This document shows positions 3,730 through 64,000 of a stretch of 64,000 nucleotides of DNA, piece after piece. This DNA comes from Corallochytrium limacisporum Hawaii (Eukaryota; Protista; Pluriformea): assembly GCA_002811645.1 (NCBI GenBank), contig PDIP01000036.1, positions 266,985-330,984 of the forward strand, given 5' to 3'. The translations under genes and the position numbers were made by a program. Position 1 is the first letter of the stretch; the number at the start of each line of letters is the position of its first letter. The notes beneath the pieces were generated by a model. That model was not told where the DNA came from. It searched no databases and worked only from the letters and a program-made list of their open reading frames with translations.

Positions 3730-6381
3730 TCAGGAGTTGGCTTCCAGCATGGCAAAGTGCTGGGCCCATGCATCAAGTGAGCTCTGATTCGCAGCGCGGA
3801 AGAACCAGCTTACACTCCCCTGTCCATTGATTCTGAAGGCCAGGGACTCGTCACGAACCCTCCCTTTTTCAATAACTTTGGTGCTAGGATCGTCCTTTGG
3901 AAGACAGCACAGCTGGAATTTGGACTTCTGGGCTACCGCCTCGTTCCAGGTACCCTTTGGCTTTTTCTTGAACACAAAGAGGCAACCATCCCGACTAACC
4001 AACCAGACTTGCTTCCATTTGTTCTTCACTCGCAGTTCAACTGGTCCCTCACAGGGTAGGTAGTCAAGGTTCGCGGGCGAAAGAGATTTTGATGGAACAA
4101 ACAGCTGTTCTTTGACGGCACCATCGGAGTCTTTTTCGGCGGCGTCAACTAAGGCTTCATTGCCTCCCGGAATAGTACCGACAGTGACAGGCGCGGGTTT
4201 GCCCGCCGACACGTCAGAGGGACTCCGCCTCGCAACCACAGGCGCAGTTGATCCAGTCTTCAGCACCACCAGGGAAGGCATGTGCTCGTAAGGCTTCAGA
4301 CCAGCAGCATCGGTTGCTTCAAGGTCTGCACCGTTCCACACGAGGAAGTGACACATCTTCTCAAACCCATTCCTAGCTGCTTCATGGAGTAGCAAAGTCG
4401 TGCCATGGTCAACAGAACTATTCACATCGGCGTTATGTGCAACTGATACATGAGCCAATTCCAAATTATTCTGCTGTACGGCAAGCCTAAGGGTATTGTT
4501 TGGGCTGTCCGTTAATTCCCAGGTGCCAAGTCCCACACGGTCTGCATATTTGGACTTCACAAGCGCGGGACGATCGCTTGGGACAGGCTCAGGCGGATTT
4601 GCCCAGTAACTGCGGTTGACGATAGTGTTTCCAAGGTCCGCTAACATACGCAGTGTGGCATCACTCCAGCGATCAAGAGCAAACGAGCGCACCTTCGAAA
4701 CATGTGTGCCAACCTGGCGATGGGCCCCTGAGCACTCAATGCACATCAGGGCCCCTAAATTGAGCGATGCCCATTCAGGATTAGGCTGCCCGCAATCAAC
4801 ACACTTGTCATTGCCCGGTGCGTTCTTAACGACTTTGATGAGCTCAGGGTCAGCCTTCACCTCACGCTGCGTACCATCGTGAAATTGATCCAGGGCAGAC
4901 AGGATTCCAGCTTGCAGACGCTGAACCCATAGGTTGAAATCACTCGTGGAATCCGCCTGTAGCTCAATAGTTTGATTTGGCCACACAAGTTGGAAGCAAT
5001 TTCGGCGCACCGTGTGTTCCAATGGTTTCACAGTGCACAACTGCAAGGTTCCCAGGGGACGAAGGGGGGCGAGGTCATCATCGTTTGTAAATTCGTCGCC
5101 CTCTGGAGAATCCGAAAGGTTTGACTGCTGTGACAGTGATCCGGCATCATGGTCTGGATGGTCGTTGTCATCCTCAGTAGCGTAGGATTCACTTACAGAT
5201 ACCGGCAAATCATTCTCTTCATCGTCCCGCAGAATACTGGGACCATTTTCCATTACACTAGCTCGCCGCATGTTGGGTACGTTCCAAGGCTCATCGCCAG
5301 GGTCAGGGTCATGCACATTCGGTTGGCTTGAGGATTGGGTTTCCTCTGCAACATCCGGGACTGATTGAGGTGGCACCACCGTCGGTGTGGCCGCCTTGTT
5401 TCCGAGGCTGGTGTAGACAGGATCTTCGAGGGCAGCGTGCATCTGGTCCTCCATTCTCGAAATGCGTGTGCGGAAGTTCGCCTGTGCGACAGCCCTGCGT
5501 TGCGAATACAGGGTACCATCCGCAATGGTGAAGAACCTTCTCGCCCATCGAGGCTTCTTCGCAGTGCCCGTGTTAATGTTGAGATATCCACGGAAAACTT
5601 CTCGTGGGTCCGATTTCTGATGAGAATTCGAAGCACCAGACTCGATCTGCGCAGTGAGCTCCTGTTTTGTTGCGGCAAGGATTCCAGCCTCCTTCTCAGT
5701 TCTCTCGATGCATTTCTGCTTGGCTTTTTGTAGCTCCTCGACTACTATTGCCATCTCATCACGACGTTTCAACAACTCACTACAGTAGTGCACTTCCGTT
5801 TCGGCCAGGGCAATGAACGCATCGAGAATTGCAACTTCCGAGTCTTGCATAGCAGCATGGATATGTTGGACAAGATTTACAGATTTCATGCGATATTTGT
5901 TCTCACTCTGTTTCGCAGTGCTTTCCAGCCCAGTGTAGTCAGTAACTTTCTTATCAGCAATCCAACAGGCCTTCAAGTCTTCGATAGCTTGTTTGTCGGC
6001 CTTGTCGAACTGTCTCCAAGCTGCCTTGGCCTTTGGCAAAGTTTCGTTCCGCAATTGCAATTTTGAGTTTTCCGCTAATTTACGTCTCTCCAATGCAAAT
6101 TTCACCTCAAGATCGCTTCGTACCATTGAATTCTCCTTCAAACGTAAAAGTGGCTTTTCCCATTCTGCTCCGGGGACCATTATACTGTCCATTTCGTCTG
6201 AGTACCGCTTCTGTGCCGTGCTAAACATCTGAGAAACCTTGGTCTGCTCTTGGGCCAAGTCATAGATGGCATACATTGCCCCGCCCCGATTCTGCAAGAC
6301 TGCAGCATACCCCTTGAGGGCGGCGCGGAAGGTGGGACTGTCCTCCACCGCTTCCTTCGCGAGGTTTGCCATACGATCCAT
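3730..6381 (-). CDS. ACAP/centaurin-beta-like ArfGAP (BAR, split PH, ArfGAP, ANK, extra PH)
   Basis: N-terminal EDSPTFRA BAR start. PH halves GYLN...WARRFF and NCFQLV...LQADS...WV. ArfGAP zinc finger CVDC...CIECSGAHR. Ankyrin LLHEAARNG. Second PH-like domain at the C-terminus. Confidence 0.9.
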   Translation of the reverse strand: MDRMANLAKEAVEDSPTFRAALKGYAAVLQNRGGAMYAIYDLAQEQTKVSQMFSTAQKRYSDEMDSIMVPGAEWEKPLLRLKENSMVRSDLEVKFALERRKLAENSKLQLRNETLPKAKAAWRQFDKADKQAIEDLKACWIADKKVTDYTGLESTAKQSENKYRMKSVNLVQHIHAAMQDSEVAILDAFIALAETEVHYCSELLKRRDEMAIVVEELQKAKQKCIERTEKEAGILAATKQELTAQIESGASNSHQKSDPREVFRGYLNINTGTAKKPRWARRFFTIADGTLYSQRRAVAQANFRTRISRMEDQMHAALEDPVYTSLGNKAATPTVVPPQSVPDVAEETQSSSQPNVHDPDPGDEPWNVPNMRRASVMENGPSILRDDEENDLPVSVSESYATEDDNDHPDHDAGSLSQQSNLSDSPEGDEFTNDDDLAPLRPLGTLQLCTVKPLEHTVRRNCFQLVWPNQTIELQADSTSDFNLWVQRLQAGILSALDQFHDGTQREVKADPELIKVVKNAPGNDKCVDCGQPNPEWASLNLGALMCIECSGAHRQVGTHVSKVRSFALDRWSDATLRMLADLGNTIVNRSYWANPPEPVPSDRPALVKSKYADRVGLGTWELTDSPNNTLRLAVQQNNLELAHVSVAHNADVNSSVDHGTTLLLHEAARNGFEKMCHFLVWNGADLEATDAAGLKPYEHMPSLVVLKTGSTAPVVARRSPSDVSAGKPAPVTVGTIPGGNEALVDAAEKDSDGAVKEQLFVPSKSLSPANLDYLPCEGPVELRVKNKWKQVWLVSRDGCLFVFKKKPKGTWNEAVAQKSKFQLCCLPKDDPSTKVIEKGRVRDESLAFRINGQGSVSWFFRAANQSSLDAWAQHFAMLEANS

Positions 6382-6724
6382 GGCCTACCACTTTATTTGA
6401 TAAGCATGGCCTATTTTCCTGCCGTATGTGTCATGTCATCATATTCTGTCTCATGGAATATTATCTTGCCTGTGTGAAGTTTAGTACCCGTCACAGACGC
6501 CTACGACGTCGTTTGTTGGCGAGCAAACGATACTCCTTGCCCTCGCAGAGACAAAACGTTCCCCCACCACACTAGCAGCCGTGTTCGTCCCTACCCGATC
6601 GCATCTACCACTGCTGACTGGGCATGGTGAGGTGAGATGTAGGGTGAATGAACTTTGTGAGTACATGAAATTCTTTTTGAGTTGTTTTTATTACATCATG
6701 GTGACAGGGCCTCAGTCACAGAAT

Positions 6725-8896
6725 TCACCGGCGTTGCTGCTGGTTGTAATATGAATTGTGGTAGTAGTGTTGACCCTGCTGTGGGTAGTGTCCGTGCTGA
6801 GGGTACTGGTGCTGTTGGTAGTACGGGGGTCGTCCTACTGGGTTGCCATAGGCCGACGTCGCAGAACCAGGCTGTTGTGGACGGTACGCAGAGTGACCGT
6901 ACTGAGGATGATGTGCATATCCCGGATGGGGCTGTTGGTACTGGGTATGAGTTTGCTGATGCGGTTGCTGTGGAGGCTGTGGGGCCTGAGGTGCTGCTTG
7001 TGCTCGAGGGGGAGCGTTTGCTGTAGGCGCTTGTGGCGGGACAGTTGGTGGCCGTCCGCCTCTCACCGGCGGCTGAGCAGCCCTGGGCTTGGGACCAGGT
7101 GCCACTGGGAAGGAACCATGGAACTGTTTGTCGGTTTGTCCAGACTGGCCTGCATTTGTGTTTTGTGGCAGAGTTTGGTTCTGATATCCACTAGATTGGG
7201 TCGATGGCGTAGACTTTGAAGCGCCTCTTGGTTGCGGTGAGTGTGACGGCGACAAAACCGGTCCCCTGTTGTTCGGGTCAGCAGCTGGTTTCTCATCTTT
7301 TTTGTTGTACTGTTTCGGTGCTGAACCTCCCTGCGCCACTTGCTGTGGGTGTTTCGGCGGTGCAACCACTGGAGAAGCTGGGGCTGGGGTGGATGCACTT
7401 GCAGCTACCGCAATAGGTGCGGGCTGTATGGGATTCTTTGACTTTGGAGGATTCTTCGGCTTGCTTGGCCCTGACGCTCGCGCAGCTGCTGCGTCCCTTT
7501 CAGCCTCAGTGACTGGAGCTTTACTGCCTGGTTTGTCACCGGCACCCTGGACAGAATCTTGAGGTTCTGTTTTCACCTTGGGCTTCGATGGGGTTGATCT
7601 ACTCTTTTGTTCCTTCTTGGGCTTCTTCTTCAGGTCCTTTTCGTTTTCCTTTGGTCCATGTCCGGGTTCGTCATCCTCGGAGATGCTCTCAGCTTCACTA
7701 GCATCTTCTAGGACATCTTTAGGGTCCTGAACGCCCTTCTTTTGGCGCTGCATAAAGTTGGGATCTTCTTGGTTGTGGTATACACGCAAAACTTGGTCCA
7801 GTCTTAAATTGAATTCCGGATGGAGGCGCATCAATTTCTTGCGCCATAGAGTTCGGATTTCCTCCTCGACGACACCGCGTTTCCTAGCTCTTTCTTTGCG
7901 AATATAGTCACGAAGCGTCTGTTTCGAGGTAAACTGACGATTGTCATAGAAGCAACGTTCACCAATCGCATCAAACATGATTCCCAGCGTATGTCGAATA
8001 TCATCATTGAGGGGAATGTTTCGCCGCCGTCCTTCCTGCTTCGCAAGGGCTGTGAAAGCTTCCTTGTTGGCTTCGACATGTTCGGAGAGCTGTGTCTTAA
8101 GGACGCGTTCCATGTTTTCTAGCAGTTTACGTGCCTTCTCTTTCGATACCTCTGCCTCATAGCGATTGATGCGCTTTCTGATGGTCAACTCGGTGACGCC
8201 GGTACGACGGGCAATCCATTGGATGGCATCCTTACGTTCCAGGCCGACCTTACTGCATGTCTGTGAGATAGCCAACATGACATCATTGAGATCCTCCCAG
8301 CTGCCACCCTGCTTCTCGAAGAACTCCTTCGTAAGGTGTGCCATGGGACCATCAACCATAAACTCATCAACTTCCTGTTCACGCTCCGGGTCATCACCTT
8401 TCTTTTTCATAGACCTGGGTCTGATTGCGCTCTTGGGCTTCGCGGTTGGGGACTCCTCTTCCGACTCTTCGTCAGTGTAAACCTCTAGCTCGCCACTGTG
8501 CACAAAAAAGCCACCATACTTCGTGGTCAGCTTTTTCGTTGCCCTTTCATCGAAATTCTCTTCATCATCGATAAATGAGTCTGCTGTATCGTAGTCATCA
8601 TCGTCCTTTTTTCTTGTGACTTTTCGAGGCGGCGGCGGTTTAACGACACCGTTCTTGTCCTGTTCGAGGGCTTCCTCCTCCTCTTCTTCACCTGCAGCGT
8701 TCACAGTCTTTTTTGTCCGCCCGGCTAAAGTGAAGTAGTCGACATCGTAATTGGTGGTGATGTCGACCTTAATGCGTTTGAGCTTTACTGAAGGCTCCAT
8801 TGACTTGTCTGTTTCCAGGTCAGTACCATTCGGCACGGTGCCTTGGTCACTTGATTCGTCCACGGCCTCAGACGACCTCTTTAATTCTGCAACCAT
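6725..8896 (-). CDS. UBN1: Ubinuclein/Hpc2-like HIRA histone chaperone subunit
   Basis: HUN/HRD motif DDYDTADSFIDDEE...YGGFFVHSGEL, a helical middle region, and a long P/Q/Y-rich disordered tail. Confidence 0.8.
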   Translation of the reverse strand: MVAELKRSSEAVDESSDQGTVPNGTDLETDKSMEPSVKLKRIKVDITTNYDVDYFTLAGRTKKTVNAAGEEEEEEALEQDKNGVVKPPPPRKVTRKKDDDDYDTADSFIDDEENFDERATKKLTTKYGGFFVHSGELEVYTDEESEEESPTAKPKSAIRPRSMKKKGDDPEREQEVDEFMVDGPMAHLTKEFFEKQGGSWEDLNDVMLAISQTCSKVGLERKDAIQWIARRTGVTELTIRKRINRYEAEVSKEKARKLLENMERVLKTQLSEHVEANKEAFTALAKQEGRRRNIPLNDDIRHTLGIMFDAIGERCFYDNRQFTSKQTLRDYIRKERARKRGVVEEEIRTLWRKKLMRLHPEFNLRLDQVLRVYHNQEDPNFMQRQKKGVQDPKDVLEDASEAESISEDDEPGHGPKENEKDLKKKPKKEQKSRSTPSKPKVKTEPQDSVQGAGDKPGSKAPVTEAERDAAAARASGPSKPKNPPKSKNPIQPAPIAVAASASTPAPASPVVAPPKHPQQVAQGGSAPKQYNKKDEKPAADPNNRGPVLSPSHSPQPRGASKSTPSTQSSGYQNQTLPQNTNAGQSGQTDKQFHGSFPVAPGPKPRAAQPPVRGGRPPTVPPQAPTANAPPRAQAAPQAPQPPQQPHQQTHTQYQQPHPGYAHHPQYGHSAYRPQQPGSATSAYGNPVGRPPYYQQHQYPQHGHYPQQGQHYYHNSYYNQQQRR

Positions 8897-11800
8897 GTTG
8901 AAGCTAATGATTCAACTGCACCTTCTTGTCATTTTCATGTCATCATATTTATATTCTCTTAAATTATGCTTGTTGTGTACGTTGAGTATGAAGTCTTTGC
9001 AGGTCCCTTGATTTGCAAACGTGAGGTCTTATCAAGGTACTGATTATCGGTAATTTTCCTACCTTTTCCGTCACCGAAGAAACAGTTTCACTTGGAGAGT
9101 ATTTTTGTCTTCGAAAAGAGGAAGATAATCACCGAATTTGTTCAACGAAGCAAATATGATGCATGAGGTCTCTGCCCATTCTCTACACATCCAAACATGA
9201 CCGCGGAAACCAAGCAGGCCCTTCATCGCCGGCAATGCGCCTCCACTGTTGCCGGGCCCGTGTCTTGGTGCCGTCTTTTCGCTCCCTCCAAACTCTTTTG
9301 CCTTCCCCCTTCGGTCCTTGCGATGCTTCTTTTCGCGCAAAGAAGCTTGCGAATGGTCGCCTGTACGAAGACGGTCCACGTTCCCTATGTTATGAACTAA
9401 TTTTTCCCCCGTATGAAACGTATCCCATAAATTTCGCTTTCGTGGGGTGAGGGAAGGAGCTAAATAAAATAGACCGCCATGCAAGCCATGCCCTTGCGCT
9501 CATAGTTCGACAGACTTTCGGGGAGCGGGTCATGGTCATGTAAAACCTATAGTATATTTTGAGTAAAACTTCAACAGAAGAAGTCAAAACAGGCTACCGC
9601 TTCTTTCATTTTCTTCTGTCCAACTTTTTTTAAGCGATTAGCCTTCCTCGTTGGACAGTCGTAACATTCACTATGGGAATGGTCCCGTTACACAGAAACA
9701 TGCTGCTTGCTAGCTCTGCGCTTTGTCTGACGAGCGAGTGCATGCGTTGTGTATCTCATTGAACACAGCACGGGTACCAATAATTAGGACCCCATATAGA
9801 GTCATAGGCTTTACAGAGCAGAGGAAATAAAAAGAGCAACGAAAACGTATCGAAGCAAAGAAGGAGGATAAGGAGGGGCAACTACCCGGTTTAGGAAAAA
9901 AAGACACAGGACACGTCGGTGGATTCGTTCGTAAGTGAGACTCCATACTCAATATATGAACAAAATTATGGTCATGGTATCAACATGGTTCTACAAATTC
10001 GCTCCTGGATACCGTGACAGCAGGATGCTAGTCTCCAGTGTGATCATTTCCTCAAGTCCCGAATGTCCGACCTCTTCCTCGCACTGGCCACCCCAAATTT
10101 CTTCTCAGACAGTGCCATAATAAATGTGCCGACATGCATTGCGGAACTCAGCAGCGAGAGCGAAGGATGGTACGAAGTTTGGGGGGTGCGGGCGCTCAAT
10201 TTTGAGAACATGGAACATCTCGATGCTCGCATGTGGGAGGACATGTTTTTTTGACATGTTGCCTGCGTGTATTTTTGTGGTCCTTGAGGGTAGCGGTCCA
10301 TGTCAGTAGTTGGTTTTGTTTGTTGTTCTTTTTGTCTCATGATGATGTCTATTGCCTGGTCACGTTCAAGGGGGGAGCTTTTACGGCAGGCGCGGGAACG
10401 ACAACGGTGGCAGCAGAGAGGAACTAGTCATTGACGTGGTTGGAAATCGGACGTATGCGCAAAAGATAAACTTCTCTGGTGTAACGCGAATGATAAGGGC
10501 ACAGTCAGATTTTATCATCCAAAAAGTAGAAATGTTGCACAGATGCTTTCTCCGACAGTTAAGCAAAATTCAGATTACGCGTCGCGTACGAAAATACACG
10601 TTCATTCATGCCTGTTGGCAACATGGCAAATATTCTGTGCTCCTGGGCGTATTCACGATACACAACGAACACAAGGACGCAATTAGTCATCATCATCATC
10701 AACATGTTACCATGCCTTGCTTCCCTATTGCACCGTTCGTTGGTGATACCATATTTCTTTAGTGTGATCTAAACGCTCTTCATGCCACGCTTTCACTATA
10801 CTGTCAGGGCAGGGCAAACCAAGGGCGGCGTCCGCGCAAGGCATAGATCTCCTGTTGTTGGTCTCTCCAGATTGTGGATGCAGAAATTGATATATAAAAT
10901 TGACCACGGATCATTTTTCTCGTTTCGAAAATTTATTCTTCACAGAAGTAGAGATCTCAGTTGGCAGTCGCCAGCCACAAACAGGACACACAGAGTATCG
11001 CGTACGATCGAGAGCGCCCAGGGGCACTGGGCAGTATAGGATCGGTCGTTCACAGCCGACGCGCGGCTTGAATCAGACGAGCCTTCACGAAACGGTTGCG
11101 GTTTCCAAGCATGCAAAAGAAATCTACTCTGTTTTCATTGCCCGCCGAGGCTGTTTCACTGGCTCACCGTATGCTATCACGCAAGAAAAAAATCATTCAA
11201 ATACTTTCACTATGACCCCAGTATACGTAAAGAAAACGTCAGGAAGATCTGCGGACTCTGTCGCGGAAAGCATGGAGTCATTTGTCTGTTTGCGAGCCTA
11301 GTAGCATTGACATCTGTTTGCCTGTCAAGAATCTGCCATGGCCTGGCCTCCCTAAAATCCCCATTCTCTCACGCCTTGAGGATGTCCAGATCATGTTTAC
11401 ACTGGGAAAGCTACCAATCCCATGGAGGACTTTGGCCAATCCACATGCTGTTCAAGTACTATGGGCCGGGCACATATGCACACAGGAACTGACCCGACCC
11501 AAAATGGGAACTCATAGCTCCACTATACCCGGCTGCAAACCCCACGAGTCTGAAACCCTTCTGAACATGCACAGCGGACATCGTCTGCTTTCAAAGGAAA
11601 CGAAAGAAAATCCTCTACAGACATGGACCATCCATCCATATTGGAAGAGATACCACACCGTGTCCTTTCTCGTAAATCTCCGTTGCTCTGCTACGGGAGT
11701 GTAAACGTGCAACCAAATCATTTCCCCGGACGTGGTATCAGAGAACACGAGCATCCAACGAGTAAGTACTACTTCACTTTAGTTGTTTCAATATGGTTGC

Positions 11801-56692: not shown

Positions 56693-58423
56693 TTACGCTA
56701 TTGCACCTGAGAGTTTTTGCTGCCATAGTCCGTGGTAACCGTCTTTGTGATATGCGACCAGGTCAGCCAGTGCCAGTGCCGTACCATTCAGAGATACTTT
56801 GCCACTGTCGACGCGGGCAATCAGGAAATCACCGGCAGCGGGCTGCCGCTTGCCGCCATTGACCAGGTCTGGCACTTCACGCACGTCCACAACCACCCGT
56901 CGGTTTCCATCGTCCCGGGTATAAATCTTACTCGGGTCTTTCTTGCCATACTTTTCCACCAAGACCATTTTGTGTGTGCCATGGAGGGGTTTGGTCTTAG
57001 CTTCCACGTCGGTATAAAACTGGTCGATCATCGCCTTCAATCTCTCTTGCTTCACCTCTGCTGGAACGTCATCTTCATAGTTTCTGGCAGCGTGGGTTTT
57101 ACCACGATCTGAATAGGCGAACATGAAGGCATAGTCGTATCCAACTTCCTTCATGAGCACCATACTCTGCAGATGGTCTTCTTCGCTTTCACCACAAAAT
57201 CCAACAATCATGTCTGTAGACAGGGCAATGTCAGGGATCTTGCTCCGGATGTCCATCACCAGTCGCTGATAGGCATCCCGAGTGTACCCACGTCGCATGC
57301 GCTGCAGCATGTAGTCCGATCCACTCTGTGCAGGGAGATGAATTTGCTTACACACATTGTGCTTTTCTGCAATTACATCTATCAGAGCCGGAGGAAAGTC
57401 CTTTGGATGAGGACTCGTGAAGCGGAATCTGACATCTGGGCAAGACTCGGCCACCTGGTAGAGCAGATCTGCAAATCGCGCACCTCCATCTTTCCGACGG
57501 TAAATTGTACGGAAATTCTCATTGGAAAGCAAGGCAGAGTCTTCTAGAACAGGACTAGCCCTCCGATCATTATATGAGTTGACATTCTGGCCAAGCAGTG
57601 TGATATCTTTGATGCCCGCATCCCGAAGATACCGCACTTCGTCTGCAATGGAGCCCACATCCCGACTGCGCTCGCGGCCACGTGTAAACGGCACAATGCA
57701 ATAAGAACACATGTTGTTACAGCCACGCATGATGGACAAGAACGCGGTAGGCTTGTCGGGATTGATACGCACAGGTCTAACATCGGCATAGGTCTCGTCA
57801 AGGGAGAGAGCGACATTGACTGCCTGATCACTGGAATTGTGAATCGCGCTCAGCATGACTGGGAGGTGTCGATAACTGTCAGGGCCAGCCACCAAATCGC
57901 AAAGACCATCCTGCTCTAACAGCTTTGTCTTCAATCTTTCTGCCATACATCCCAAAACGCCCACTGTGACTTCCTCTGCATCAGCTGCGAATCTTTGTTT
58001 ACGCTTCCAACCACGAAATTCTTTCAGTCTCCCCCAAATCTTGCTCTCTGCGTTTTCGCGGATGGAACATGTGACCAACAAGATCACTTCTGCTTCTTCT
58101 GGAACGTTTACCCGTTCATATCCAGTCTGTTTTAACATGGCCCATGCAACTTCTGCGTCACTGACGTTCATTTGACACCCATATGTTTCAATGTAGACCT
58201 TTCTTCCCAAGCCATGCACGTCTGCATGTTCCAAGTACGGCATGACTTCGGGATTTGTTGGCTTCCCAAAGTCAAGGATCTTATTGTCTCCCTTGCTACC
58301 CATGAAGTTCTTTAAGGTCAAACCATCGTCTTTGATGGACCGGGTGGTGTAAGGCCGCCAGGCAATCCTACCGGAAACCAATCTCAAGACCGGCCTCCAG
58401 TCCCGCCTCCGAAATGCCTGCAT
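56693..58423 (-). CDS. CDK5RAP1: Mitochondrial tRNA methylthiotransferase (MiaB-like)
   Basis: TYGCQMN, TCSIRENAE, radical-SAM CNNMCSYC, FTSPHPKDF, TRAM-like C-terminus, and an Arg-rich presequence from ATG 58423. Confidence 0.95.
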   Translation of the reverse strand: MQAFRRRDWRPVLRLVSGRIAWRPYTTRSIKDDGLTLKNFMGSKGDNKILDFGKPTNPEVMPYLEHADVHGLGRKVYIETYGCQMNVSDAEVAWAMLKQTGYERVNVPEEAEVILLVTCSIRENAESKIWGRLKEFRGWKRKQRFAADAEEVTVGVLGCMAERLKTKLLEQDGLCDLVAGPDSYRHLPVMLSAIHNSSDQAVNVALSLDETYADVRPVRINPDKPTAFLSIMRGCNNMCSYCIVPFTRGRERSRDVGSIADEVRYLRDAGIKDITLLGQNVNSYNDRRASPVLEDSALLSNENFRTIYRRKDGGARFADLLYQVAESCPDVRFRFTSPHPKDFPPALIDVIAEKHNVCKQIHLPAQSGSDYMLQRMRRGYTRDAYQRLVMDIRSKIPDIALSTDMIVGFCGESEEDHLQSMVLMKEVGYDYAFMFAYSDRGKTHAARNYEDDVPAEVKQERLKAMIDQFYTDVEAKTKPLHGTHKMVLVEKYGKKDPSKIYTRDDGNRRVVVDVREVPDLVNGGKRQPAAGDFLIARVDSGKVSLNGTALALADLVAYHKDGYHGLWQQKLSGAIA

Positions 58424-59609
58424 CGTTGAAATCTTGTTACCCGAATTCACATTCTGCAAGAAGTCGTCTACATATGAATTTCACTGACATGAGGAAGGAG
58501 CGCCATTGAGGCACGACGGCGGATGGTTTACCTTACATAGCCGGTTCTGTACTCGCTCTTCCAGACTACTATCCCATCACTTAGCAATGCACGGCCTGCC
58601 CAACCCGCACCTCTACGGCGAGCGATGACTGCGTGTGCGGCGCAGAAGTATAATAACTGAACACCTGAAAATATTCTTTAATATGAATTAAGCTCTTATC
58701 CGCAAAAATATTGATTATCGTGTCGACCGCCTCTTTCCTCTATCGCAGTAGTTCTCGAGTAGTGGATCGATCCTTGGGGCGCATCCACACTGTGTCACCC
58801 ACACTCACACAAACACAGTCAACCACAGAGCAGATTGGGGTACATAACAGACCCTGATGCCCGCGTACAGGTGCGCTCCTTGCACGCTCCTGAGTTCCGC
58901 GTGTGAGGCCGTGTTTGCCTCAGGGGTCTGCGGTGTTTTTTTCGCGTCCGTTGCGACGAAACTCACGACACGGTCAGAAGCGAACCGACACCTCAGCCAG
59001 TGAAGGCACACCTGGGCCTCATCATTTCTTCATGAACAATTCTCCTTTCTAACTTGGCTGCTGTGGGTAGTACAGCTTGAATCGCAGACGTTAGAAACTG
59101 AAGTAGAAAAGCAAGCAGAGTGGAATAAATAGTTCTAAGAACGAGGCACGAAGACAGGAAGTAAAGAAACCGAAACGTTTCTAACCACAGCGCCCTTGAT
59201 TTATATAGCAGAATCCTCAGTAATTCTTGGACGGCGCGGACTTCAAAAAATATGAATCTATTTGTATGAAAGTGGGCGACCTGGCAAACATGGACGACAG
59301 TAAACGTAATAGACCGTGTTGTTCTTGTTTTTCAAAAGAGGAGCCTGCAAACAGCACACCTTCCTCTACTTTGCATCTTAGGAAACGCACCGAGCAACTT
59401 AACCGAGGAGGACACAGACGAAGTGCGAAACAGGGAGAGCAGATCTGCGTTGAAGACTTTGCAAGGTCCATCTATGTGCAAATTTATAACAGGCATTAAT
59501 TTAATCCAACATGGTGTTTCCTACTCTTTGATGATCTGTTGATGAACACACAACCACAAAAAGCGCAGTGGAACGAAAGATCGAGTCGAACCAAAGGCCT
59601 GTGAACATC

Positions 59610-59615
59610 GAGAGC

Positions 59616-59646
<31 letters not shown>

Positions 59647-59652
59647 AGAGAG

Positions 59653-59694
<42 letters not shown>
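59610..59694. repeat. Imperfect (GA)n microsatellite
   Basis: About 85-nt GA run with a few GC interruptions. Confidence 0.95.
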
Positions 59695-60085
59695 GGGGGG
59701 CCAGGCGGCGTGCGGTGTTGAGGGAAGCGAGGGGGAGGGGTGGCGGCAGGGAGTGTGTGTGTGTGGGGTGCGGTCATGGTTCAATGAAAAGTGTCGAGTG
59801 GCGAGTTTCCTTTGCAATTGCGGAAAGTGCGCGGTGGACAAATAGACTTTGGGACGGGGGCCCATATGCATAGGGAATCCCTGTTTGAGGAGTAGCTTTC
59901 AATTCTTATGGGAATGGGTAACAGTACAGGGTCCTGTTGTCCTGCGTTCCGATCTTGCACCTTATAGCATACTTAAGACACATGAGGGAATATATTTGCT
60001 ACAGTGCTTCAACGTAATTGTTGGATTTACATTGATCACTACGGTAGCCTGTTTTACACCCATACCCCTACATATAAACACAAAG

Positions 60086-61765
60086 ATGCCACACGTTTTG
60101 AGTTCACTGGCCGGTTTGGAGTCGGCTAGCGACATACCACCCCTGTCCAGTCCGGACCGGCGGCGACGCTCAGTTTTGTGCACGATCCCTACAACGGAAA
60201 ATCCCGTGGACATTGAAGCTACTCAACAGAATTTGGAGCATGATGTGCTCTTGACTCGCTTCCAGTCCTTGTTTGGATTCGATCCCCGGACGATCTTGAG
60301 TCCGCGCATGTGTATTGCAGGTGGTAGCCTGGTTCTCAGTGCTGTCCAGTCGCGTGGAGGATACTATGATGAAGCGGCGATTGCGAGCAAGGCGGCCAAG
60401 AGTGACATTGATATCTTTCTCTTTGCCGGTGGCGGTGAGGATGTGCGAGATGTGGTGCAAAGGCTTGCTGACCACTTTTGCATAACCACCTCCGAGATGA
60501 CTGTGGTACAGAGCCCGATGGCTTTCAACGTTATCATCCCCCACGGTCCTCTGATCCAGTTCATTACTGGTATACGCGAATCCACCCAGGATGTGATTGA
60601 TGGCTTCGACTTTGGAGGATGTGCCGTAGGTTTTGATACCGTTAACGGCATTGTTGTGAGTGACAGGTTCACTCAAGCTTTGTCAACTGGTTTGAATGTT
60701 GTAAACCCTGAGCATTGCGGTTTCCGAACCTGGAGTCGGGTTCTCAAGTACATGAGCCGTGGATTTGGGGTGCAAACCCCTGCATCAACATTCGATCAGC
60801 TCCTGGACGTTGCGGCACGACCCAAGACACCGGAGGCGGAGAAGCTCGGCGATACCGACTCTGAGGAATCCGGTGAAGCCGAACAAGAGGATGATGCTAC
60901 TAGTGGTGGAAGCGTCCGGCTTTCTACTCTCATTGATGACTGTCGCGGAGTTGCACCTGACCAGGCTCGTGCGATGCTGACTGAGAACATGGCAGGATGG
61001 GTCACAGGAGACATGTTGGTGGCCATGGACAACCTGTCTAAAACCATGAGCGTTCTGCAAATTCCACGAGTTAGTGGTTTGCCGATGGGCTGGTACACTG
61101 ACAGCAAAGAATTACCGAAATCGTATGGAGTGACCTATGATGGCCCGATTGTAGCCCGCGGCGCCGCCATCGGAGACACGGTCAGTCGTTGTTCAGACGT
61201 GTGGACAGATCTACTGACTGGCCATGGATCCCGCATGGCCACGCTAGCGGCGCAGGCCACGACCTTCCTGGACGAGGAATCTTACGTTAATAAGGAAAAT
61301 TACCGTTACGTCAATGAAGGTGCGGTGTCGGCCGTCTTTCAATTGCTGCTTGGCCAGTACGTGAAGGGTGAGCACTGTCTCTCTCGCCTGATCGACGTAG
61401 GAGCCATCCGTGCAGACTATTTTGGCATCGACCCTGAGTCCCAGACCGCCGTCATCATTGAGCTGAAGTATGTTCCGCACCGGATACTTCGTCACGCCGA
61501 CATGCCAAATTCCGCTATTACCGCACCCTTCCTCCGCAGCATGTCCGACGATGATCTTCTCAACCTACGGCGACTTGACAAATTTTGTCGGCCGCCCACA
61601 ATGCGAGAGTTTGCCGAGTACGTGCACTTCAATCAGACTAAGCGGTACGAACGCGAGCTCATGTTGAGTGGTCTGGTCCCCAAGAATGTGACAAAGTGCC
61701 ATTCATACTCGTTTGTGGTCGTTGCGGGCATAACCGTACTGGTCCATTCCAGCGTTACAGTTTAG
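60086..61765 (+). CDS. Pol-beta-type nucleotidyltransferase fused to PD-(D/E)XK nuclease-like domain
   Basis: N half: CIAGGS...SDIDIFL...IQFI...FDFGGCAVGFD...RVLKYMSRGF. Acidic linker. C half: YVNEG...RADYF...VIIELKY...QTKRY. First ATG is 60086 (559 aa). Confidence 0.7.
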   Translation: MPHVLSSLAGLESASDIPPLSSPDRRRRSVLCTIPTTENPVDIEATQQNLEHDVLLTRFQSLFGFDPRTILSPRMCIAGGSLVLSAVQSRGGYYDEAAIASKAAKSDIDIFLFAGGGEDVRDVVQRLADHFCITTSEMTVVQSPMAFNVIIPHGPLIQFITGIRESTQDVIDGFDFGGCAVGFDTVNGIVVSDRFTQALSTGLNVVNPEHCGFRTWSRVLKYMSRGFGVQTPASTFDQLLDVAARPKTPEAEKLGDTDSEESGEAEQEDDATSGGSVRLSTLIDDCRGVAPDQARAMLTENMAGWVTGDMLVAMDNLSKTMSVLQIPRVSGLPMGWYTDSKELPKSYGVTYDGPIVARGAAIGDTVSRCSDVWTDLLTGHGSRMATLAAQATTFLDEESYVNKENYRYVNEGAVSAVFQLLLGQYVKGEHCLSRLIDVGAIRADYFGIDPESQTAVIIELKYVPHRILRHADMPNSAITAPFLRSMSDDDLLNLRRLDKFCRPPTMREFAEYVHFNQTKRYERELMLSGLVPKNVTKCHSYSFVVVAGITVLVHSSVTV

Positions 61766-62778
61766 TTTCGGGCTGCGGACTCCCGCCCGATCTTCTTGTC
61801 CCAACTAGAATACGTAGCATCTATAAAAAGTTAAGTCCAAACACAACTCTATACGCGCACATTTCAAGTCATCGATGGCTACATTGTCTTGGTGTGCATG
61901 CAATTATATAAAGTCACATCCTCGCACAGTATCCGAGCGTCAATAAAATGGAAGTCTCGATGCCAAATTGTGATCGTCCTCGCACCCAAATCCACAATAC
62001 TCTCTCCCCCAACGGGGGGGTTGGCCCCACACAAAACAAAGGGGGGGGGCTCGCCCCTTTGAGAGACGTTGCGGTGACAGGAAAGGGCTTTTGCGAGGCA
62101 GAGGCCCCCCGCTCCCCCCCCCTCTCTCTCTCGGACGAGGGAGGGGGAGAGATTACCCCGGGGGGGGGGAGGGGAGGGGGTTTACCGGTGGAGAAATCGA
62201 GCGAGTTCTGTTTTCACCCCGTCATCAATTTAATCCATCACGGAGAAACGATGGGCTTCGTCGCCTGTTCAGAGATGTTAACTTTCGATAGCGCTCTATC
62301 ACTTGGATGCCAATGACCATTCCAGACGTTCCATCTGCTTTTTTTGTTGTGTGCTCCAAGACGATCCGCACGGGAAAGGCAAAAAGGCGGGCGGGTTGAG
62401 TGGTGGTTGGTGGTGGTGGTGGTACCGGCGATTAATGCAGCGGTCACCTAACCCACCCACCGCCCCCCCCCCCCAAAGCAGGGCCACAGCCCCGGGTGAC
62501 CCGTCAGTGGGCCCATGTTTTACTTTTTAGCCTTTTTTTTTGGGTTGTGAACCCCTCCCTTTTTTTTCTCTGCCACAAATCGCTCGCTCGGGTGTGTTTT
62601 TGAACTTTTTTTATTTCCTTTTTTTTTTCTTTTTAAGATCAGTTGGTATTTGTTTTTTTATTGGGCCCTGTTCGATCTCAATCTGGCCTGTTCGGGTAGT
62701 AAGAGAAGAAAGTTTAGAAAAAATAAACCAAACCACTCTTGCTACTGTCCCAAGTAGCGAACGCCTTGTGGGGAGGAA

Positions 62779-63445
62779 GAGAGAGACACAGACACAGAGA
62801 CACAGAGAGAGAGAGAGAGAGAAGAGAGGAAGATAAGGAGAAAGTGGAGAAAGAAGGGAAATTGACAGTGGGGCCGGAGGGGGGAGAAGGCTTAGAGTAC
62901 GCAGCCGCCCCCCGGAGAGGTAGGAGACTTGGGCTGTCAATTTTTGCGACGCGATGGACAGCGAAACTTTTAAGGGAAAATTTTATTTAAATTTGGGACA
63001 AATTTAAAAAGAGAGAGAGACACAGAGACACGCAGCGAGAGAGAGTGGTGAAAAGTGACAAAACACTCCCAGCCGGGAAAAATTCACCGTCGGACTTTCA
63101 ATTTTTCAATTTTTTTTTTGGGTGCTGTCGGAGAGGCACGGAAGGGAGTGGCGCTCGGAAGGGGAATGAAACTTTTTCAATTTTCATTGTGGGTGGTGGG
63201 GGACCCACTCCCTTTTTTCTTTCTTTGATTTCGGTGCTTGGCCCTTTGTTTCCTTTGCTGCGCTCTCCGGGCTCAGTTTTCCAATAAAAAGAAAAAGAGG
63301 AGAGAAAAGAGAGAATAAAAATAAGGGGGGCAAAAACTTTCTCTCTATCTCTCTCTCTCTCTGTTTTCTTTTTTCTTTTTCTTTTCGTTCTTCCTTTGCT
63401 CTCTCGCTCTCTTGTGCCTTCCCCCCCCCCTTCCCTCCCTCCCTC
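62779..63445. repeat. Cluster of GA/CT-rich simple repeats and homopolymers
   Basis: GA runs at about 62779-62830 and 63010-63045; CT, T and C runs at about 63340-63445. Confidence 0.8.
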
Positions 63446-64000
63446 CGGTCTGTGGCCAAGGGGCCGCTCACCGTAGAGTAAGGATTCGTTAGTGCCCCCG
63501 GGCTGCGCGCCCCACCGTAGCCACACATGCGCCGCAGTTTTTGGCTGTGTGTTCTTGGAAACTCGACCCGGGGGATAATTCATACCGAACACACTGCTAC
63601 TAAGCACACGCGAGCACTGAACTACGGAGAAGAACGCACTCTCTGGCTTGCCACGGTTTCAGATTGGATCGATGGCTTTGTTTCATAGCCTTCGTTTCGT
63701 GTCAGCATGCACACGATACTAAGCGTTGTTGCTCCACCGTGCTGCTCTCTTTGCAGATGGCTTCGTGCAGGCTGTCGAGCTGCCCAGCTGTACCATCTGC
63801 AGCATGCCAAGAGGAAAGCTCCTTGAAAATTTGGTTCGAAGGCCCTTTTTTACTTGTTCTTCACTTTGCCAAATGATCCCGTACAGTATCTATAGCAAGG
63901 CAATGCCCACTCGGATCTCCCGACCGGAGAAAAGCAAGTAAAAAAGGCGGGACGGTAAAGGTGGGGTGGACGGCGGAGTGTGTGTGTGTGTGTGGGGGGG

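Follow-up and report, generated by a model that had tools for sequence, protein, structure and literature searches.

The phage protein Gad2 is needed to overcome the Gabija defence system, is toxic when over-expressed and is predicted by AlphaFold to be a nucleotidyltransferase (bioRxiv 10.1101/2023.05.01.538930). Its mechanism has not been described in the literature so far, nor has a biochemical function been described there for eukaryotic members of its family. The gene analysed here lies within a 64,000-nucleotide stretch of the Corallochytrium limacisporum genome (the window) and shares with Gad2 of SPbeta-like Bacillus phages both the Pfam family PF26128 and a predicted nucleotidyltransferase (NTase) domain. 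However, the phage protein has about 400 residues, whereas the present one is encoded by a eukaryotic chromosomal gene of 559 codons with a unique C half; as Gabija is absent from eukaryotes there is no target for an anti-Gabija activity, and none is expected here. In this gene a known, functionally obscure family takes on a new domain architecture. We see a roughly even chance that it is an expressed, native, single-copy gene of two modules, a Gad2-family NTase and a PD-(D/E)XK-type core, that acts on nucleic-acid ends.

The open frame extends from 59849 to 61765 on the forward strand, its first ATG at 60086 opens the 559-codon reading frame, and a search of the organism's own genome (24.1 Mb) recovered a single copy. 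The gene is real, and codon usage (cosine 0.949) and GC3 (0.57, against 0.48-0.63 across the genes of the window) mark it as native. The preliminary description of this DNA had placed the gene in isolation between repeat-rich flanks. No long neighbouring ORF is indeed close by, the upstream neighbour being a divergent radical-SAM MiaB/CDK5RAP1-like gene that starts at 58459 on the reverse strand, 1.6 kb away, and no long ORF being present 3' of 61765 up to the contig end; the downstream gap of 'over 2 kb', however, is truncated by the assembly because position 64000 is that end. The repeat content comes down to one (GA)n array at 59610-59694 and another at 62778-62828.

Contigs from a small public run (X1), presumed as a guess to be RNA, fall on the ORF in fragments at 60061-60605, 60623-60905, 60921-61175 and 61329-61847, so that both halves of the protein are covered; they also cover the neighbouring gene and leave both intergenic stretches bare. 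This coverage, with its gaps and without joints, agrees with a transcriptomic source, with an intronless mRNA and with a start at the ATG at 60086, and the intronless ORF initially proposed is thus upheld by a single open frame and by contigs free of joints. The gene is very probably transcribed, and contigs this fragmented are compatible with one continuous transcript without proving it. In another run labelled as the same species (X2) the neighbouring gene is seen but nothing on this ORF, which would suit a gene recently taken up from a giant virus or phage, that is, a viral conflict gene resident in a eukaryotic genome, as would the position of the gene 2.2 kb from the contig end and the abundance of its family in phages and giant-virus metagenome-assembled genomes (MAGs). 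Such an origin, which had been raised at the outset, is nevertheless distinctly unlikely: the gene resembles the others of the window in codon usage and GC3, it lies among ordinary cellular genes, and its best matches are roughly equidistant (25-34% identity, none closer than about 34%) with many cellular eukaryotes among them, including Naegleria, Protostelium, Heterostelium, Pedinella and Globomyces, so that no donor can be named.

Features of the gene and its predicted protein, with positions in the window
Feature	Position	Strand	Basis or remark
Full-length intronless CDS, 559 aa and stop codon	60086..61765	+	ORF list, own-genome search, codon usage
Extent of run X1 contigs, four pieces, no joints	60061..61847	+	Probable transcriptome
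Pol-beta-fold nucleotidyltransferase domain, aa ~50-245, PF26128 (Gad2)	60233..60820	+	AF2, Foldseek, sequence matches, label
A-G-G-S, aa 78-81, hG[GS] NTase motif	60317..60328	+	G79 in 94%, G80 in 99% of family
D107-I-D109, metal-binding DxD (then I)	60404..60412	+	Invariant, 69/69 relatives
Q158, within I-Q-F-I, aa 157-160	60557..60559	+	Family-invariant Gln, 69/69
G-F-D-F-G-G-C, aa 173-179; F174 and D175 invariant	60602..60622	+	G177 where Asp is 91% conserved
R218...K221-Y222..R225-G226-F227, family signature helix (K-Y-M-S-R-G-F, aa 221-227)	60737..60766	+	Family alignment
Acidic linker, aa 246-290; 13 D+E vs 4 K+R	60821..60955	+	Low AF2 confidence
Middle region, aa 291-397, low-confidence helical prediction, no relatives	60956..61276	+	AF2, sequence search
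Orphan C-terminal module, aa 398-559, candidate PD-(D/E)XK nuclease core	61277..61762	+	hhalign
E429, aligned to conserved Glu ahead of PDDEXK_9 GRxD	61370..61372	+	Profile alignment
R441-A-D443, aligned to GRxD / raD motif	61406..61414	+	Profile alignment
E459-L-K461 (I-E-L-K-Y, aa 458-462), aligned to (D/E)xK motif	61460..61468	+	Profile alignment
Q517-T-K-R-Y521, QxxxY of the preliminary description	61634..61648	+	Adds no profile score
Hydrophobic last 19 residues, aa 541-559; mean Kyte-Doolittle value 1.77	61706..61762	+	Last beta-hairpin or possible tail anchor

That the N half (aa ~50-245) adopts a Pol-beta nucleotidyltransferase fold can be regarded as settled. The AF2 model of residues 50-245 has a pLDDT of 80-95, and Foldseek matched it in the PDB to 3wfq, 4wby, 5hc9, 1miv, 3aqm and FAM46 (E 7.5e-6 to 1e-3, probability 1.00), the top listed neighbours of solved structure being class II CCA-/A-adding enzymes, bacterial poly(A) polymerase and TENT5/FAM46; in BFVD the structural matches are proteins of giant viruses and phages. 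Both model and matches bear out the NTase that had been proposed from motifs, all of which are found where they had been placed. Class II CCA-/A-adding enzymes and bacterial poly(A) polymerase (PF01743) provide the best solved-structure matches across the domain and align with it by profile at GG...DxD, but identity is only 12-16%, PF01743 does not match the protein, and an hhalign comparison of the family profile with PF01743 members is limited to this motif A. The neck, body and tail domains with which CCA-/A-adding enzymes hold tRNA are absent here, and where class II motifs would stand the Gad2 family has a GFD motif and a Gln that never varies. The TENT5/FAM46 proteins, eukaryotic enzymes of template-independent RNA tailing, are likewise fold neighbours (E 1.5e-4 to 1e-3) but at 10-13% identity share no kinship at the sequence level and carry other C-terminal domains. 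Neither the protein nor the family profile, searched against PDB sequences, gave anything beyond chance matches. The strand expected to bear the third carboxylate carries Q158, for which the invariant D175 may be the alternative candidate. The caveat first attached to this position, a Gln within IQFI, holds; with Q158 invariant in 69/69 relatives, the Gln is a family trait rather than a flaw peculiar to this protein.

Membership of the Gad2 family is given by a PF26128.2 annotation already assigned to this very sequence, by the PF26128 label also found on its second-best match (P0003) and by look-alikes in the Atlas, which are Gad2 clusters. Sequence search gave 235 matches at E<=1e-3, and all of the 150 listed fall on aa ~27-276; the N-terminal motifs are more than chance, since they correspond to conserved columns of a family of this size. 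An exhaustive search found NTases of the PF26128 type in protists, chytrids, giant viruses (many of them giant-virus MAGs) and phages, which bears out the distribution first given for the KY..RGF subtype, namely giant viruses, phages and fungi. Pfam (in a model collection that lacks PF26128), NCBIfam and PADLOC gave no family match to the whole protein or to either half, and the sole PHROGs match was phrog_1614 ('nucleotidyltransferase', E 0.07-0.23). A Pfam match to DUF1236 was discarded as spurious. With tblastn the N domain had no match at E<=0.01 in 50,697 phage records, from which we take kinship to Gad2 itself to exist at the level of profile and fold only. The short relative P0023 did not match phages by tblastn either.

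Within the family this protein is the most divergent of the 70 aligned members. Nine of the 30 columns conserved at >=80% are altered, among them R142Q, R162G, D177G, G185T and Y215T, and the loss of conserved basic and acidic positions (R142Q, R162G, D177G) marks a divergent Gad2-family member whose NTase, with two Arg and one Asp among the changes, could be altered or weak. Taken further, these changes might describe a degenerate or re-purposed pseudoenzyme, in a protein that works by binding alone. That reading is unlikely, given that the six family-invariant residues (D107, D109, Q158, F174, D175 and R218), both metal-binding Asp included, are all kept together with the GG motif, so that across the family signature AGG, SDID, QIILR, GFDxDxC and KYxxRGF every invariant column is retained. 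Moreover some of these substitutions recur in the nearest relative, P0017, and so point to a subfamily more than to decay.

The structural comparison of the N half also bears on the idea, drawn from the analogy made in the preliminary description alone, of a CBASS-like single polypeptide in which the NTase would make a cyclic or linear oligonucleotide messenger that switches on a fused nuclease effector. In CBASS there are two genes, the NTase is of the cGAS/DncV kind and the effector contains a nucleotide sensor domain; none of these features is found here, and the likeness is confined to the general idea of pairing an NTase with a nuclease. The abundance of the family in phages and giant viruses would be compatible with such a role, but the neighbours listed by Foldseek for the N half are RNA 3'-end tailing enzymes (CCA-adding, poly(A) polymerase, TENT5) with no cGAS, DncV or CD-NTase among them; PADLOC gave no match, and a SAVED, STING or CARF-like sensor domain was found in none of the libraries searched, just as had been noted of cyclic-nucleotide sensors from the outset. 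Signalling of this kind is highly improbable.

The C half is an orphan. For aa ~285-559 no relative was detectable in 1.84 billion representatives, word-index searches, whether started from the full sequence or from aa 385-559, recovered only the protein itself, and the ESM Atlas held no usable match. The same was true of tblastn against plasmids and phages at E<=10, of phmmer against 155 family proteins and of tblastn against giant-virus and metagenome loci, while none of the Pfam, NCBIfam, PADLOC or PHROGs models matches this half. PF08011 (PDDEXK_9, formerly DUF1703) gave no match at E<=10 by hmmscan and none in a six-frame search of the genome, the C half not reaching the curated cut-off of 25.5 bits. 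Prediction of structure is unusable here, with a pLDDT of 32 for the C half alone and below 50 within the full-length model, and the low-confidence model is mostly helical, with helices drawn over D443.

Profile alignment is nonetheless suggestive. In hhalign the C half scored 22.6-22.7 against the PDDEXK_9 profile (P 0.0036-0.0042, HH probability 8-9%), a profile that the preliminary description had picked by eye from that same motif, and in the alignment the conserved vE..GRxD..ELK columns are occupied by E429, R441, D443 and E459-L-K461. None of 960 controls, whether shuffled or real sequences, reached this score. E429, D443 and E459-L-K461 together match five PDDEXK_9 positions of strong conservation, four of which are catalytic; a match to five conserved columns occurred in only one of 340 controls. 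The profile of a second PD-(D/E)XK family, PDDEXK_3, aligns the same RxD...ELK residues in the same register (score 19.1, where the null sequences peak at 17.1; P 0.022), although the two results are not independent because both see one short hairpin; PDDEXK_1 gave no signal. The resemblance to the PDDEXK_9 nucleases that follow an AAA-ATPase-like domain in Bacteroidota is one of register, helix...E...(G)RxD...hhhELK, and of position, the domain forming the C terminus of proteins of about 520-600 residues and the C half being likewise terminal. In contrast, an insertion of about 40 residues follows the ELK here, the Q-to-Y spacing differs, and the N-terminal partner is an NTase, not the usual AAA-ATPase-like domain. 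The initial proposal that an NTase took the place of an ATPase is conjectural. N-E-G is present at aa 410-412, and the QxxxY tail does not raise the score even with the insertion deleted.

A PD-(D/E)XK nuclease in the C half is therefore plausible but unproven, since no Pfam model matches; the proposed PDDEXK_9-type nuclease stands as far as the register of the profile and its P of about 0.004 go, but not in a Pfam match, in its HH probability or in a usable AF2 model. It is quite possible, short of probable, that the C half is instead a non-catalytic, lineage-specific extension serving substrate binding, regulation or localisation, for instance as a membrane anchor, with E...RxD...ELK a look-alike by chance. 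The want of a family-model match, the unconfident and largely helical AF2 prediction and the low HH probability would all fit such an extension, as would the hydrophobic terminal 19-mer and the many unrelated non-enzymatic partners (BTB, Ank, TPR, RING) that relatives carry. Chance resemblance accords less well with a PDDEXK_9 score unmatched in the controls, with the joint hit on the five conserved positions and with the recurrence of the same residues in the PDDEXK_3 alignment.

If the C half is a nuclease-type core, the two modules may be read together as follows. Module 1 (aa ~50-245), a Gad2-family NTase whose GG, DxD, Q, FD and R..KY..RG signature is intact, would add nucleotides to a 3' end without a template. 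Module 2 (aa ~398-559), which follows the acidic linker and a helical spacer and is most likely a PD-(D/E)XK-type nuclease core, would cut DNA or RNA at a metal site predicted to consist of E429, D443, E459 and K461. The substrate would be nucleic-acid ends, because the fold neighbours point there and so do the fusions of the family to PARP/WGR/BRCT and PNKP modules in other eukaryotes. Among 149 family representatives the partners comprise BTB, ankyrin, RING, TPR, PARP/WGR/BRCT and PNKP modules, those related to DNA breaks occurring in four (PARP/WGR/BRCT) and in one (PNK3P+AAA_33). None of the 149 had a nuclease domain of a recognised type or a counterpart of the present C half, and the fusion is thus not an architecture already common in annotation. 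A precedent for adding plus trimming on one chain is the E. coli CCA-adding enzyme, whose polypeptide also includes a phosphoesterase (HD) domain. The purpose of such an activity could be repair, RNA turnover or genetic conflict, and the company that the Gad2 family keeps gives no more than a hint of a role in defence or conflict. The more specific proposal of a one-polypeptide eukaryotic 'cut-and-tail' enzyme, engaged in conflict with giant viruses or mobile elements or in the processing of damaged ends, is unlikely.

The analysis shows the Gad2 NTase family, known for a verified phage anti-defence protein, to be widespread in cellular eukaryotes and giant viruses and to occur in many fusions, some of them with DNA-break modules. 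Should the C half not be a nuclease, the gene would still be a member of an obscure family, divergent and private to its lineage, and of modest interest. Should its nuclease-like character be true, nucleic-acid ends would be indicated as the substrate of the family and the protein would offer a compact test case. The cut-and-tail reading, if correct, would provide a first handle, open to experiment, on what the widespread Gad2-like NTases of protists, chytrids and giant viruses modify and could show how phage Gad2 disarms Gabija.

In this 559-aa protein an intact-looking but divergent Gad2-family nucleotidyltransferase (NTase) domain, folded like enzymes that tail RNA 3' ends, is joined to an orphan C-terminal half. 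Searched exhaustively with HMMER (E<=1e-3), 1.84 billion representatives yielded 235 matches; all of the 150 listed fall on aa ~27-276 at 24-43% identity, the lowest E among those listed being 3e-9. The family signature, drawn from 70 aligned domain pieces, is AGG...SDID...QIILR...GFDxDxC...KYxxRGF. All six family-invariant residues are retained (D107, D109, Q158, F174, D175 and R218), but of the 30 positions with >=80% conservation 9 are altered, including R142Q, R162G and D177G, and no other of the 70 aligned members diverges as far. Some of these substitutions recur in the nearest relative, P0017 (34% identity), whose C terminus is unrelated. The glutamine that the preliminary description flagged at the usual third acidic position is present, but it is no defect of this copy, Q158 being invariant in the family.

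Given the 70-piece alignment, AlphaFold2 reaches pLDDT 80-95 over aa ~50-245, and Foldseek matches the model in the PDB to class II CCA-, CC- and A-adding tRNA nucleotidyltransferases (3wfq, 4wby, 5hc9, 1miv), a bacterial poly(A) polymerase (3aqm) and TENT5/FAM46 (E 7.5e-6 to 1e-3, probability 1.00). In the protein collection, this protein and its second-best match, P0003, carry the Pfam label PF26128, named Gad2 (Gabija anti-defence 2) in the Atlas; model, fold matches, signature and label together uphold the NTase assignment. The CBASS-like scheme also proposed, in which a nucleotide messenger activates an effector, is unlikely because the fold neighbours are tailing enzymes, with no cGAS-like enzyme among the PDB matches listed, and neither a sensor domain nor a defence-library match was found. 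Gad2 was discovered in SPbeta-like phages, which need it to defeat Gabija; its over-expression is toxic, and an AlphaFold prediction made it a nucleotidyltransferase (10.1101/2023.05.01.538930). A review from 2026 (PMC13670838) does not yet describe how it works.

Named cellular relatives occur in Naegleria, Protostelium, Heterostelium, Pedinella and the chytrid Globomyces, with others on MAG contigs of giant viruses, up to 730 kb long, and Foldseek against viral models finds proteins of tailed phages and of giant viruses, the latter named 'ankyrin repeat' and 'BTB', in agreement with the occurrence of this subtype in giant viruses, phages and fungi given in the preliminary description. It is this abundance in phages and giant viruses alone that suggests a possible role in conflict. 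Two tandem PF26128 genes (6001-7881, 626 aa; 8828-10801, 657 aa) lie close to phage-integrase and PNP_UDP_1 phosphorylase genes on a 26.5-kb metagenomic contig, L136. A Pfam scan of 149 family representatives identified as partners BTB_2 (18), ankyrin (about 7), PARP+WGR+BRCT (4), RING (3), TPR, MYND and protein kinase (2 each), and PNK3P+AAA_33 and PP2C (1 each); NTP_transf_6 also matched in one member. The DNA-break modules among them offer a hint, the sole one, to the substrate. None of the 149 has a recognised nuclease domain, so fusion of the NTase to this C-terminal half is an uncommon architecture.

Features of the NTase gene and its surroundings
Feature	Window position (strand)	Residues (aa)
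Single open frame	59849-61765 (+)	
First ATG	60086	
A-G-G-S		78-81
D-I-D		107-109
I-Q-F-I		157-160
G-F-D-F-G-G-C		173-179
K-Y-M-S-R-G-F		221-227
Acidic linker		246-290
N-E-G, R-A-D, I-E-L-K-Y, Q-T-K-R-Y		C half
Hydrophobic C terminus	61706-61762	541-559
MiaB/CDK5RAP1-like methylthiotransferase gene	56693-58459 (-)	
(GA)n/(AG)n microsatellite, 42 copies	59610-59694	
(GA)n/(AG)n microsatellite, 26 copies	62778-62828	
X1 contig cover of ORF, four pieces	60061-60605, 60623-60905, 60921-61175, 61329-61847	
Contig end (contig position 330984)	64000	

The C-terminal half resists ordinary searches. No match to aa 285-559 was found by the exhaustive HMMER search, two word-index searches recovered nothing but the query protein, and neither an Atlas search (no usable match), tblastn against plasmids and phages (E<=10), comparison with other family members and fetched viral loci, nor Pfam, PHROGs and PADLOC models matched this half. 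AlphaFold2 gives it pLDDT 32 alone and below 50 over most of its length in the full-length model. The PF08011 (PDDEXK_9) model has no match in this genome, although it does in the Bacteroides control.

In hhalign, a profile of PDDEXK_9 domains from Bacteroidota genomes (n=28 initially, 34 with wider sampling) places E429, R441, D443 and E459-L-K461 of aa 385-559 on the conserved vE...GRxD...ELK columns at a score of 22.6-22.7 (P 0.0036-0.0042, HH probability only 8-9%), all the profile tests resting on one short hairpin from whose motif the family was picked by eye. That score was reached by none of 960 controls (470 query shuffles and 490 random 175-aa stretches cut from real proteins; maxima 22.04, 22.48 and 20.05), and only 1 of 340 controls matched five strongly conserved columns, as the query does. 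The same RxD...ELK residues align with a thin PDDEXK_3 profile (score 19.1; highest null 17.1), no signal comes from PDDEXK_1, and deleting the 40-residue insertion after ELK neither aligns the QxxxY tail nor raises the score. Of the proposed fusion the NTase stands, and the nuclease is plausible: from these alignments we lean slightly towards a PD-(D/E)XK module. The last 19 residues, the protein's most hydrophobic (Kyte-Doolittle mean 1.77), could be a tail anchor instead of the final beta-hairpin. PDDEXK_9 itself is present in only 7 of 121 sampled Bacteroidota genomes; a single Segatella copri genome, G003, has at least 23 copies, nearly all C-terminal in ~520-600-aa open frames.

The ORF is confirmed as first described, with every quoted motif in place. 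Its isolation holds as regards non-coding flanks and a divergently oriented radical-SAM neighbour 1.6 kb upstream, but the 'over 2 kb' downstream is cut off by the assembly, the contig ending 2.2 kb past the stop codon, and the flanking repeats are only two (GA)n arrays (Tandem Repeats Finder). The neighbour's best 80 prokaryotic matches are almost all from Bacteroidota and Rhodothermota (42-50% identity over ~440-500 residues). Whole-protein, C-half and family-profile queries show one copy in the 24.1 Mb genome, with no C-half paralogue. The gene is native in codon usage (cosine 0.949 against the other long ORFs of the window, range 0.78-0.97; GC3 0.57 versus 0.48-0.63) and no close relative appears among the matches listed; the suggested horizontal acquisition is neither needed nor supported.

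In X1, a small public run (13-14 Mb of contigs) whose RNA nature is only guessed, contigs cover the ORF and the MiaB-like gene (up to 58695), with none on either intergenic region, where the microsatellites were skipped as repeats, and no joints. Cover confined to two genes is the pattern expected of a transcriptome, and fits an intronless mRNA starting ~25 nt before the ATG and ending ~80 nt past the stop; transcription of the gene is very probable. As the pieces are separate, one transcript spanning both halves is only likely. Run X2, which bears the same species label, covers the neighbour at ~98% identity and higher depth and has no contig on the ORF (58400-61847 compared); the cause could be presence or absence between strains, divergence above 5% or lack of expression.

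Bacterial CCA-adding enzymes offer a precedent: their NTase shares its polypeptide with an HD phosphoesterase domain. The C-terminal module here would be a metal-dependent nuclease, and the protein may both cut and tail nucleic-acid ends. The gene is a new domain architecture within a known, functionally obscure family, of moderate interest now and of greater interest if its C-terminal half proves an active nuclease.
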